A stretch of 64,000 nt of DNA from Syncephalis fuscata S228. Taxonomy: Eukaryota; Fungi; Zoopagomycota. The stretch spans positions 1 to 64,000 of the forward strand of contig JAHLTZ010000035.1 of the NCBI GenBank assembly GCA_025786725.1. The letters run 5' to 3'. The notes under the pieces were generated by a model. It did not search any database. It was given only the letters and a program-made list of their open reading frames with translations, and was not told the origin of the DNA. The position numbers and the translations under genes are program-made. Shown one piece after another: positions 300-17,770 of this stretch (position 1 is its first letter; each line of letters begins with the position of its first letter).

Positions 300-890
300 T
301 TATCTTTGGCATGTACCGTTTAACACTTGCTTATAATCGCTGTATGTTCGGTCAAGCATTCGGTCAATCAGGAATATTGTATTGCTATTAGGTTTATAAT
401 TGCCAAGAACCATTGCGCAATTTACATATGAAACTTCATTTCTCACATAAAAACAAAGTTTTTTCTTTGCATAGCTATTGACTCGTTTACAGCGATTTGG
501 AAACATAGCATTAGGTAACTCATCGCGAGAGAATATGTAATATTTTGCTTGTTCGGCGGTTAAAGTACCAATAAAAGAATTATTTATCGGTACAAAAATA
601 ACACTGTCTCTAGTATTTAGTAAAGAAGGGTTCCTGGAGCTAGATTTAAGCGCCTCAGTGATGGCAGAATAAAACGAGCTAATACCTTGGTTGTTAATAG
701 TTCCTAACGCATATCCTAATAAAGACCTATCGCTTTTCCATGAATTTTGGGGTTAAGTAAAATCCCTTTTTAAAAGAGCGTGCTTCGCATCAAATGTCTC
801 AATAACGTTTTTTCCATGAAAATATTCGGCAGGAACAGCTATCACTACCGAGAATAAAACAAATGCAAGAAATATAACGTGTAATAACAT
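300..890 (-). pseudogene. Secreted FAS1 (fasciclin)-like protein, copy A, with one in-frame stop
   Basis: Manual translation from ATG 890 aligns without gaps to ORF 16880..17470 (both 591 nt): signal peptide MLLHVIFLAFVLFSVVIA, KR site, SVIFVPINNSF, YVNCA..NTIFLIDRML. TAA at 755-753 lies where the paralog has AAA (Lys). Confidence 0.65.
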
Positions 891-1709
891 GCTTAAAATG
901 ATGGAGTGCTATCACAATAAATGGTATGCTTGATATAAACAGAATGCAGTTGATGCTTAATAGTATAGAAATGCAGTTGATGTTTGAAAATACAGAAATG
1001 CTAAACAAGAAGGATGCAATGAAATAAATGCAAAGTGAAGAGTATATTGTTAACTTTGTACCATTTATTTGTAGCTTTATACAAAGGATTGCACTCAATA
1101 ATAACTGCCCAACTATTGGTCAAAGTCCATATTGAGATTGGCAAAATACGTCATTGCCTATTTATTGTGCCTTTGCTCCTTTGATTGTTGCTATTCAAAT
1201 AAACATTGAATATACTTGTTACTTTAGTTTATATCACTAACTGTATATTTATGCAATTACTTATAAACAGTCTAGCTGATGGTTTTAATCTACAGCTATT
1301 TAATCAAAAGGCTAAGATAGTTTCATCATGCGATATATTGTTGAACATTATACTTGTGTAACCATCAGGTTGAATGTAAAGCACATGCTTCATCATCCAT
1401 TTACCGACCTTCTTTGTTCTCGTATACACACTTGCAAAATACGTGAACTGTAACATGCGGTACAACCACATGAACATGAGTTGTTGCCATTCCCATCAGA
1501 GTAGACCTTGAATACCACATGAACACAAATAACATTTATTAGTGCAGTATAGCGTGATGTATTCATTCAATCTGTTACTCATTCTATTACTCTGTATTTG
1601 CACTCAACATTCGTACTATTTGTAACTTTGTTTACTGGAGCTAGCAGGTCTGCTCTATTCTGTCATAATCAACTCGTATCACCAACTATTTAACTTACTT
1701 TTTAAGTAA
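891..1709. promoter_or_regulatory. Shared bidirectional intergenic region of the FAS1-like / 2-TM gene pair
   Basis: Lies between divergent starts. Near-identical to 16060..16879 (inverted) and partly to 13013..13555. Confidence 0.6.
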
Positions 1710-14476: not shown

Positions 14477-16059
14477 TTAACTGAACGAAGTATCTTTAAA
14501 CAAATCAGATGACAAATAAAATGTTCCCAATCGGTGCTGAAAAGATTCAAGGTTTGATACCCGAGCTTCGAGCGGCAATACACTTGATGTAGATGCAAAC
14601 GATTTACTATGGTGAGCCATTGAAGTATTCGGTAGACATGTGCTATTCGGGGTCGGTTTATCTAGCAGTATATTGCTGTTATTTGTACTTGGATCGCCTT
14701 CAAGTGTCGCAAGTCGATTTGACATTATTGTAAATTGCTTCATTTGTGCTTCCATTTGTGCCGCCATTTGTGTTTGCTGCGCCGTCATCATTGTTTTAAG
14801 CTCACGGATTTCATCAGCACGAGGATGAATGGCGGATAAGCTTTGTTGTTCATTATTAATTAATATAGACGGTATACACCGAGATACATCATTGGTCGAT
14901 GACTTGTGTTGATTTGGATTATGAATAGGTTTTGGCAACCAGGATGCTGTGCCACGTTGTTCTGGATTTGGCATATGTAGAAATGTCATGTCGGTAACCG
15001 ATTCTTGATTAAATCCGGGATTGTAATATGATTTAATGCTAACCATAGACTGTGGTAAAAGGCTAAGCATTTTACTACGCATAATGTATCGTTGAATGAT
15101 TCCCCATGGCCGGAGACGACTTTGGCCAAAAAGTATGGTGAAAATAGCAATAAAAAATGATATAGCACCACCAATTGACGATAACGCTTGAAAAAGATTA
15201 ATAGGACGTCGTGCAATTTCTTTTTTTACTATAAAGCCATAGCTATTGCTTGACGGTTCATTACGAGGGACAATGGTAAATTCGACTATTGTTGAGTTTG
15301 TTCCTGGTTGCTCATAAAACTTTAAATCGTAAACGGCCTCATTCCGCTTCTTCTTTTCTTTGTAAGACTTTAAAAAGCTAAGCCTATTATTGGTTCCACT
15401 TTTTACGGTAAAGCGAGCACCATAATCAACTGTAGCCAAATCAAATGGCTTTCCATGTTTTGTCGAATTAAGTAAATCAGGATTGCTAATGAAAAATATA
15501 TCGGTTTGAAAATTAAAAGGCCGTTTAGCGGAACTTGATATAAAAGTTTTATATTTCATTTTGATTTTTATATTAATTTCAACGATAGGTGTTTTACCCA
15601 TATAGATTTTGTCTGAACCGTAATAGGCTTTAGGAACAAATATAGCACTAATATTGGGCTTTAGCATAAACATAGAAAGTTTGAATTGTTTAGTGAACGA
15701 GACCTATAAGCTCCATTAGATAGCTGCCAATCTTGAATTGGGTAGCTTGAGTCAGTTACATTATCTTTCCAATTGGGAAAATCAGCCTCATGACTGCCTT
15801 CCATAAATACGTATGAATCATTGGCAATTATACCATGATAATTAATAAGTGAATTATTTGCTACTATTGTTCGAAATAGTATAGATGGTACACCAAGTGA
15901 TTCAGTATGATGCAAAGTTTGATAAATATCTTCCACTTCAATCACATCTCTCAATTGTATAGCAATAAACAAAGTCAATCCAATAAACCCTATTACTAGG
16001 AATAGAAAGCGCGATATTACAAGTGAAGTTGGTTCATGTGAAGCATTTAGAAAACGCAT
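14477..16059 (-). CDS. Two-TM membrane protein, copy 3 (one frameshift at ~15680)
   Basis: ORFs 15661..16059 and 14477..15673. TM1, VPSILF, TM2 LFQALSSIGGAISFFIAIFTILFG, LRPWGIIQRY. Confidence 0.8.
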
Positions 16060-17770
16060 GTTGCTTAAAAAGTAAGTTAAATAGTTGGTGATACGAGTTG
16101 ATTATGACAGATTAGAGCAGACCTGCTAGCTCCAGTAAACAAAGTTACAAATAGTACGAATGTTGAGTGCAAATACAGAGTAATAGAATGAGTAACAGAT
16201 TGAATGAATACATCATGCTATACTGCACTAATAAATGTTATTTGTGTTCATGTGGTATTCAAGGTCTACTCTGATGGGAATGGCAACAACTCATGTTCAT
16301 GTGGTTGTACCGCATGTTACAGTTCACGTATTTTGCAAGTGTGTATACGAGAACAAAGAAGGTCGGTAAATGGATGATGAAGCATGTGCTTTACATTCAA
16401 CCTGATGGTTACACAAGTATAATGTTCAACAATATATCGCATGATGAAACTATCTTAGCCTTTCGATTAAATAGCTGTAGATTAAAACCATCAGCTAGAC
16501 TGTTTATAAGTAATTGCATAAATATACAGTTAGTGATATAAACTAAAGTAACAAGTATATTCAATGTTTATTTGAATAGCAACAATCAAAGGAGCAAAGG
16601 CACAATAAATAGGCAATGACGTATTTTGCCAATCTCAATATGGACTTTGACCAATAGTTGGGCAGTTATTATTGAGTGCAATCCTTTGTATAAAGCTACA
16701 AATAAATGGTACAAAGTTAACAATATACTCTTCACTTTGCATTTATTTCATTGCATCCTTCTTGTTTAGCATTTCTGTATTTTCAAACATCAACTGCATT
16801 TCTATACTATTAAGCATCAACTGCATTCTGTTTATATCAAGCATACCATTTATTGTGATAGTACTCCATCATTTCAAGCATGTTACTCCACGTTATATTT
16901 CTTGTATTTACTTTATTTTTAGCAGTGGCAGCTGTTCCTACCAAATATACTTTTGGAAATAGTGTTACTGAAGCACCCAACGTAAAGCACTCTCTTTCAA
17001 AAAGAATAGTAAAAAAACCTCAACACTTATGGTTTGATGATAATTTTTCGTTAGGAACAGCAATGAAAGAGATTGAAGATCAAGGCAGTTATTTATTTTT
17101 GAATGTCATTGCTGGAGCAACCGGGTATACCTCCAACGGCACTTATCCACTAAATATTCATGATGGTGTTGGCTTTGTACCATTAGAAGGATTTTTTCAT
17201 GGCAGTTTAACCAGTGAACAAGCAGCACATTATATGTCCTCTCGTGATCGTCTTCCTAAAACTCCACCTTCAATTGGATGCTATGATGTTTATAGCTATG
17301 CAGAAAAGCCGCTTTGTCTTCATGTAAAAAATGGCTTTACATATGTAAATTGCGCCAGGATTGTTTCCAGGTTTTGGCATAAAAACAATATAGTTTTTTT
17401 GATTGATCGAATGCTTGATCCAACATTTAATGATTATAAGCAAGCAAAAGACGGTACATGCCAACGATAATAAAGTATCATATATTATACTATAAATCTA
17501 ATGGCCTCATTATATTTTATTGACTATCAAATAATGCATGAATGTGTTAAATACTGGACTGTAAAATATGATAAGTGCAAAATGACTGGTAAACTGTGCC
17601 TACTAAATCTGCGATTATTCAATTTTATACAAACATCACAAACATTATACTTTTGTACATTACCTTTATTTATCCATCCATCCATCCATCCATCCATCCA
17701 TCTATTCATTCATTCATCCATTTAACTTTAATCGATGTTTGTTTATTTATCTGTATTTATTGGTAAGTAG
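15538..17770. repeat. Right arm of inverted segmental duplication (partner 1..2233)
   Basis: Reverse complement of the window start. Confidence 0.95.
16880..17470 (+). CDS. Secreted FAS1 (fasciclin)-like protein, copy B, 196 aa
   Basis: Signal peptide, Kex2-type KR, H1-like GVGFVPLEGFF, H2-like YVNCARIV...NNIVFLIDRMLDP, 4 Cys. Confidence 0.75.
   Translation: MLLHVIFLVFTLFLAVAAVPTKYTFGNSVTEAPNVKHSLSKRIVKKPQHLWFDDNFSLGTAMKEIEDQGSYLFLNVIAGATGYTSNGTYPLNIHDGVGFVPLEGFFHGSLTSEQAAHYMSSRDRLPKTPPSIGCYDVYSYAEKPLCLHVKNGFTYVNCARIVSRFWHKNNIVFLIDRMLDPTFNDYKQAKDGTCQR

Follow-up and report, generated by a model that had tools for sequence, protein, structure and literature searches.

A head-to-head gene pair encoding a secreted FAS1-like protein and a two-transmembrane protein of predicted channel fold in Syncephalis fuscata: a candidate recognition locus with divergent extracellular blocks

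The window analyzed here is a stretch of 64,000 nucleotides of contig JAHLTZ010000035.1 of the mycoparasite Syncephalis fuscata S228 (assembly GCA_025786725.1), and its start is a contig end inside a repeated flank. In this window, a gene for a secreted FAS1-like protein and a gene for a protein with two transmembrane helices (2-TM protein) are linked and diverge around a conserved spacer, and the allelic variation of the pair is concentrated in the extracellular parts of the products. Self-comparison of the window revealed two inverted copies, arm A (1 to 3322) and arm B (14417 to 17770), in agreement with the original prediction made from this DNA, as well as a third, partial copy C (11402 to 13559). 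The features are as follows.

1 to 299: downstream flank of FAS1-like copy A, 99% identical to 17471 to 17770; the contig begins within this repeat
300 to 890, minus strand: FAS1-like gene copy A, 196 codons, intronless, with a signal peptide and an in-frame TAA at codon 46 (753 to 755)
891 to 1709: divergent spacer A, 819 bp, a probable shared promoter, 99.3% identical to spacer B
1710 to 3251, plus strand: 2-TM gene copy A (predicted PAC/ENaC fold), 513-codon open frame, ATG lost through a 1-nucleotide deletion
3330 to 11400: ~8 kb separating the inverted copies, occupied by ordinary genes (patatin-like lipase, NDUFA4/B12D)
11475 to 13012, minus strand: 2-TM gene copy C, without a FAS1 partner, four 1-nucleotide deletions in the assembly
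13013 to 13559: partial spacer copy, the channel-proximal 547 bp, 98% identical to A and B
14477 to 16059, minus strand: 2-TM gene copy B (predicted PAC/ENaC fold), split by a 1-nucleotide deletion in an A-run near 15681 into open reading frames (ORFs) of 132 and 398 amino acids
16060 to 16879: divergent spacer B, 820 bp
16880 to 17470, plus strand: FAS1-like gene copy B, intact, 196 amino acids, with a signal peptide and a single FAS1 domain
17471 to 18133: flank downstream of FAS1-like copy B; comparison with contig C116 indicates that the duplication extends to 18133

When arms A and B were compared by segment, the flank (1 to 299) was 99.0% and the spacer 99.3% identical, so the near-identity of both, as first proposed, was borne out. 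The FAS1-like genes were 82% identical in the signal region, 57.5% in codons 21 to 100, and 68% in the C-terminal half, and the encoded proteins were colinear at 47% identity. Identity falls at the stop codon (300) and returns at the start codon (~890), placing the limits of divergence at the ends of the FAS1 coding sequence, where they had been put originally. For the 2-TM gene, identities were 87% in the ectodomain, 71% in TM2, and 74% in the tail. The claim that the coding DNA is hypervariable thus holds for the FAS1-like gene; the 2-TM coding sequence is rather a patchwork, with some segments 95% to 100% identical between copies.

All three window 2-TM copies contain single-base deletions in this assembly, six in total: in A at the start codon (1710), in B near 15681, and in C near 12998, 12477, 11940, and 11712. 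Because sister 2-TM copies on other contigs have intact ORFs of 513 to 566 amino acids, the deletions may be polishing errors; copy C itself has an allele, C85b, with an intact ORF of 513 amino acids. Frameshifted copies were compared at the DNA level only and were excluded from the codon tests, as was the FAS1-like copy C42a, and the stop codon of FAS1-like copy A was coded as X. In copy C42a (contig C42, also labeled L023, ~1740 to 2450), tandemly duplicated sequence forms three in-frame insertions, and 1 nucleotide is deleted near the 5' end.

A genome search gave 15 matches for the spacer, 10 close copies of the FAS1-like gene, and more than 50 matches for the 2-TM gene. Each of the 10 close FAS1-like copies has a 2-TM gene as its head-to-head partner, with ~800 bp of spacer between the two. 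The copies fall into three loci, each of which is present twice: C279 with C85 and C116, C79 with C42, and C223 with C239. Contig C85 matches the window at 17800 to 24878 (99%) and at 3330 to 9206 (98%), the middle block being in the opposite orientation, and the flank of C79 is present only in C79 and C42 (99% identical). Another 10 kb of the window had no near-identical second copy among the matches listed. We infer that the short contigs are alternate haplotypes left unmerged where the alleles diverge, each locus being represented by two probable haplotypes. Among four Zoopagomycota assessed with single-cell genomics, three proved to be non-haploid (PMC6784888; see also PMC9457484). The least certain pairing is that of C116 as the allele of arm A, because it is based on a shared repeat plus the unique outer flank.

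Although the FAS1-like proteins do not reach the Pfam gathering score for PF02469 (12.3 and 15.5 bits for the window copies, against a cut-off of 22), weak matches to this family were found in eight of eight members (best E value, 5.9e-05), and the family profile matched periostin (E value, 1.9e-08) and TGFBIp (7e-08). The predicted model (pLDDT 63) had FAS1 domains as its top Foldseek matches (E value, 4e-04). H1- and H2-like motifs are present as the invariant F99-P101/F106 and N170/I175-D-R-M-L179, the second of which aligns with the H2 motif of periostin, and two cysteines are invariant. The product is a secreted protein with a FAS1 fold, homologous to solved FAS1 domains, and the profile and Foldseek matches thereby uphold its initial identification as FAS1-like. 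In copy B, residues 18 to 49 are disordered, with a KR at 41 to 42, and the C terminus is not hydrophobic; the KR site is present in six of nine copies within this low-confidence stretch, which is possibly a propeptide, and the C terminus is hydrophilic in eight of nine. Since no hydrophobic C-terminal anchor signal was found, the protein appears soluble and ligand-like rather than an anchored adhesin, the other role proposed for it at the outset. No toxic domain was found among its Pfam and structure matches. Like the FAS1 proteins periostin, TGFBIp, and MPT70, it has a secreted single FAS1 domain with H1- and H2-like motifs, whereas the Syncephalis family lies below the Pfam cut-off, lacks the anchor signal, is hypervariable, and was found only in Syncephalis-like genomes.

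The model of the 2-TM protein (pLDDT 87; predicted as a monomer only) shows two TM helices around a beta-sheet palm ectodomain. Its best structural match was PAC/TMEM206 (Foldseek E value, 3e-12; Z score, 12.7 over 242 residues; rmsd, 6.1), followed by ENaC (Z score, 11.8), ASIC (11.7), and FaNaC (11.6), all well above unrelated entries, and PAC and ENaC/ASIC are tied within 1 Z unit. These fold matches fit the early description of the protein as channel-like. Weak sequence similarity to the channel families was seen just before TM2. However, the Cys-rich thumb is absent (no cysteines in 12 of 12 ectodomains), as is the GAS motif, the IGG stretch of TM2 aligning with PDPNaC1 and being followed by hydrophobic residues, and PF15122 (PAC/TMEM206) was matched by no member of the 52-sequence alignment. 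Strict membership in ENaC/DEG or PAC was therefore rejected: with no ectodomain cysteines and no GAS motif, the protein has the fold of the PAC/ENaC/ASIC superfamily and belongs to neither named family, and its activity as a channel is suggested by the fold. Like PAC/TMEM206 and ENaC/DEG/ASIC, it has two TM helices flanking a beta-rich ectodomain; unlike them, it has a cytoplasmic coiled-coil tail of ~200 amino acids, and at ~10% identity it belongs to an unnamed Zoopagomycota/Mucoromycota family. Relatives are expanded in Syncephalis and Thamnocephalis, and the predicted-structure neighbors in the ESM Atlas are unnamed Mucoromycota clusters. In some of these Mucoromycota clusters, the 2-TM fold is fused to Kelch/galactose-oxidase-like propellers, which hints that fungal receptors with the PAC/ENaC fold form a larger family that has yet to be named.

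The linkage of the two genes, originally proposed from the window, extends to two other genomes, in which the partner proteins are ~40% identical to those of S. fuscata. A metagenome contig (L057) encodes a 537-amino-acid 2-TM protein (39% identical) with a FAS1-like gene head to head at 772 bp (HHalign, 98.6%). In Syncephalis pseudoplumigaleata (L056), the starts of the FAS1-like gene and of an unannotated 2-TM gene are 885 bp apart, and the pair lies downstream of another 2-TM gene, a layout that matches C223/C239. The FAS1-like gene there is likewise unannotated (L056:5660-5940; 2-TM start, 6826-6976), and its frame is broken after ~95 codons at a junction with a polo-like kinase gene, possibly an amplification chimera. 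FAS1-like copies in other genomes turned up only beside 2-TM partners, and neither a protein search nor a metagenome scan gave other FAS1-like relatives beyond S. fuscata. No FAS1-like neighbor was found beside distant 2-TM homologs in Thamnocephalis and Syncephalis plumigaleata (six-frame check) or in one metagenome (called genes), and the pairing is thus limited to one 2-TM subfamily. The copies from other species are distant, and trans-species alleles were not resolved in the trees.

Short collinear blocks of the spacer are common to all three genomes, and the invariant blocks (window positions 891 to 1709, L056, and L057) contain two CCAAT-like boxes and a TCTTTGTT element. We take this element to resemble an HMG-box binding site. 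HMG-box factors are encoded by zygomycete sex loci, and a link of the spacer to mating is therefore possible. No known structured RNA was identified in the spacer (no Rfam match to an E value of 0.5).

Allelic comparison, which covers the two probable haplotypes of one isolate, was based on five module pairs: B/C85, A/C116, C79a/C42a, C79b/C42b, and C223/C239. Alleles were 97% to 99% identical in the flanks and 96% to 98% in the spacers, 55% to 74% in FAS1 codons 21 to 100, 69% to 87% in the ectodomain, and 92% to 98% in the tail, except for A/C116 (71%), copy A being a chimera. Amino acid differences were most frequent at ectodomain residues 61 to 100 and 141 to 200 and at FAS1 residues 21 to 90, and there were almost none in TM1, TM2, and the start of the tail. 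Synonymous divergence (dS) between alleles was 0.29 to 0.93 in FAS1 codons 21 to 100 and 0.29 to 0.42 in the ectodomain, compared with 0.04 to 0.17 in the tail, and the pairwise ratios of nonsynonymous divergence (dN) to dS were 0.5 to 1.2 and 0.35 to 0.56 in the first two regions, respectively.

Overall dN/dS was below 1 (M0, 0.44 to 0.77). Codon site models (M1a/M2a, in our own implementation; recombination can inflate such tests) indicated positive selection in mature FAS1 (P = 4e-6; 18% of sites, omega of 3.2) and in the ectodomain (P = 1e-6; 3% of sites, omega of 6.1). When the thirds of the ectodomain were tested apart, the first two were significant (P = 0.0009 and 0.003), and no positive selection was detected in the last, membrane-proximal third or in the tail. 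The variable blocks represent lineages of considerable age that have been maintained for a long time, and a minority of their sites is under positive selection. Of the strong diversifying selection originally proposed, this minority of sites stands; with dS equal to or higher than dN in the variable blocks, uniformly fast recent change does not, and purely recent positive selection was rejected. A dS as high as dN together with a pair unlinked elsewhere had been named as evidence that would count against that proposal, and the high dS was indeed found, whereas all 10 close FAS1-like copies in this genome were linked to a 2-TM gene. Targeted mutation resembling that of diversity-generating retroelements or repeat-induced point mutation was also rejected, the spectrum being ordinary and transition-rich across all three codon positions. 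The pattern is the signature of old allele blocks under balancing selection with a narrow footprint, in which some sites are driven to change; such a narrow footprint was reported in Aspergillus het genes (PMC11138114).

The copies exchange segments. Within a haplotype, spacers A, B, and C are 98% to 99% identical, and the channel-proximal halves are 100% identical between C79a and C79b and between C42a and C42b; between haplotypes, identity is 94% to 98% (95% to 96% for spacer A). Spacers are thus more alike in cis, as predicted by gene conversion, the process that had been invoked for the homogenized flanks. The 2-TM copy A is a chimera, 95% to 99% identical to B in the middle of the ectodomain (~1900 to 2200) and 100% identical to C in TM2 and the tail. 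C79a and C79b are identical in the last 60% of the ectodomain and 69% alike in the tail, and a test similar to the pairwise homoplasy index rejected clonal descent (P = 0.003, the lowest value attainable with 300 permutations). We consider old balancing selection plus gene conversion to be the best reading of the origin of the pattern. The 8-kb block (3330 to 11400) is framed by the 3' ends of A and C, which together make up a near-perfect inverted repeat. Its first 5.9 kb is inverted in haplotig C85, which may reflect a real inversion polymorphism or an assembly choice.

Other repeats were noted in the window. Positions ~22836 to 24660, in the flank of arm B, belong to a large dispersed gene family with dozens of copies at 65% to 73% identity. 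Three tandem units of ~2085 bp (57783 to 63913, to the window end; 88% to 93% identical) contain exons of a degenerate kinase-like gene, and short diverged noncoding repeats (71% to 73%) are located in intergenic regions at 14006 to 14214 and 34451 to 34683 and at 34235 to 34510 and 37612 to 37888.

We put about half of our confidence in a recognition locus at which a ligand and its receptor are co-regulated and act between individuals of Syncephalis. The shared spacer would co-express the two genes, and the secreted FAS1 protein would bind the exposed ectodomain of a trimeric 2-TM protein, either on the contacted hypha or on its own. A matched or mismatched combination of alleles could then gate an ion flux or signal via the conserved coiled-coil tail and so decide fusion, mating, or rejection between individuals. 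Rare specificities would be favored, and divergent blocks would therefore persist, while recombination and conversion would homogenize flanks, spacer, and tail and shuffle ectodomain segments among the copies. Two features of allorecognition loci were found, namely, tight linkage of the partners across genomes and, in the two haplotypes, deep divergence confined to the presumed recognition domains. A more specific version, a first zygomycete self/non-self system in which a PAC/ENaC-fold channel is gated allele specifically by a co-encoded polymorphic secreted fasciclin, with specificities arising via segmental conversion, is possible but doubtful.

Several observations weigh against such a locus. 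FAS1-ectodomain distances covary no more than FAS1-tail distances, and the test is driven by locus structure. The FAS1 partners of C79a and C79b are only 30% identical in the mature part despite the shared end of the ectodomain; because these copies share its last 60%, any strict one-to-one matching would have to depend on the first part alone. A FAS1 partner is missing from many 2-TM paralogs, the GAS motif and the Cys-rich thumb are absent, and the sample consists of two haplotypes from one isolate. In addition, recombination may have inflated the site models, and the FAS1 halves were borderline when tested separately (P = 0.15 and 0.05).

The alternative that survives best, although we find it unlikely, is that the pair is directed at the host: the channel-fold ectodomain would sense host molecules, the FAS1 protein would be a secreted attachment or effector protein, and the diversity would stem from host-parasite coevolution. 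Syncephalis species live as biotrophic mycoparasites (PMC6784888), fungal fasciclins are tied to pathogenesis and symbiosis (PMC9391592), and host-parasite coevolution predicts the same signatures of extracellular positive selection and old alleles. The absence of clear covariation between FAS1 and the ectodomain also fits, but the strict head-to-head linkage in three genomes is left unexplained except as co-regulation.

There is only a small chance that the pair is an effector-immunity or decoy system, in which FAS1 would act on the channel-fold proteins of non-kin competitors, or serve as a decoy for a shared enemy (virus, bacterium, or toxin), with the diversity reflecting escape. The linkage of a secreted to a membrane gene, the swapping of ectodomain segments, and the retention of just the channel-proximal 547 bp of the spacer by partner-less 2-TM copies are compatible with this; the lack of a toxic domain in the FAS1 protein speaks against it.

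We also consider it improbable that no selection for diversity is involved and that an old birth-and-death family, with conversion between paralogs placing diverged blocks in homogenized frames, relaxed constraint, and pseudogenization, accounts for the pattern. The overall dN/dS, the stop codon in one FAS1-like copy, the evident mosaics and cis conversion, and the possible propeptide nature of FAS1 residues 18 to 49 are in line with such a history. Against it, the divergent blocks at all three loci fall on extracellular coding parts and not on the spacer or tail, for most of the variable blocks, the copies compared include no near-identical donor (nearest neighbor, 57% to 80%), and the site models reject neutrality for FAS1 and the ectodomain and not for the tail.

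Finally, although the contig-end start within a repeat and the six error-like deletions could point to an assembly artifact, repeat collapse or mis-polishing is a highly improbable source of the identical flanks and spacers, since the pattern is repeated in the deep interior of contigs C79 and C223, where the flanks are unique, and is thus not merely a contig-end collapse, spacers are more alike in cis than across haplotypes, the pair is present in independent assemblies, and collapse would not yield colinear stop-free ORFs with 35% to 67% identity and conserved FAS1 motifs.

A recognition locus of the kind favored here would have parallels elsewhere. In the Papaver S-locus, a small secreted ligand (PrsS) is linked to a membrane protein (PrpS), with ion influx on allele match; that plant system has a single locus, and its proteins are unrelated to those described here. 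The Tgr proteins of Dictyostelium are single-pass cell surface proteins with immunoglobulin-like repeats. The tgrBC genes form divergent pairs on one promoter, with duplications and inversions, and tgrB1/tgrC1 resemble the Syncephalis pair in that ligand and receptor are polymorphic, each genome has several pairs, and local duplication, inversion, and recombination are seen alongside broken copies (PMC12745789); here, a soluble FAS1 protein is partnered with a 2-TM protein of channel fold, and homology was not found. Neurospora cwr-1/cwr-2 are likewise linked genes with allelic variation in extracellular domains, in which a polymorphic extracellular protein acts in trans on a membrane protein (PMC12135175), a relationship that is only predicted here. 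The proteins differ, however, CWR-1 being a polysaccharide monooxygenase and CWR-2 a membrane protein unrelated to the one described here, and there is one locus with haplogroups there compared with three loci with tandem and inverted copies here. In Aspergillus het genes, too, deep allelic divergence extends no more than a few hundred bases beyond the coding sequence (PMC11138114); their products are cytoplasmic and act after fusion, whereas here the variable parts are extracellular and the coding tail is homogenized too. Neither protein had a Pfam or structural match to Tgr, CWR, or HET proteins, and the Syncephalis pair is best described as analogous, not homologous, to tgrB1/C1 and cwr-1/2.

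To our knowledge, the described fungal allorecognition genes are all from Dikarya. Our literature search, which covered few subscription journals, found no allorecognition genes for Syncephalis and no papers on its fasciclins or on a fungal PAC/ENaC-fold family. As a concrete candidate, the pair described here could account for the discrimination of self, mate, or host in an early-diverging mycoparasite. Judging from the allele pairs, specificity probably resides in surfaces formed by ectodomain residues ~61 to 100 and 141 to 200 and by the N-terminal half of FAS1. The finding further draws attention to a family of fungal proteins that share the PAC/ENaC channel fold and raises the possibility that the gating ligand of such a channel is a polymorphic protein from the neighboring gene.

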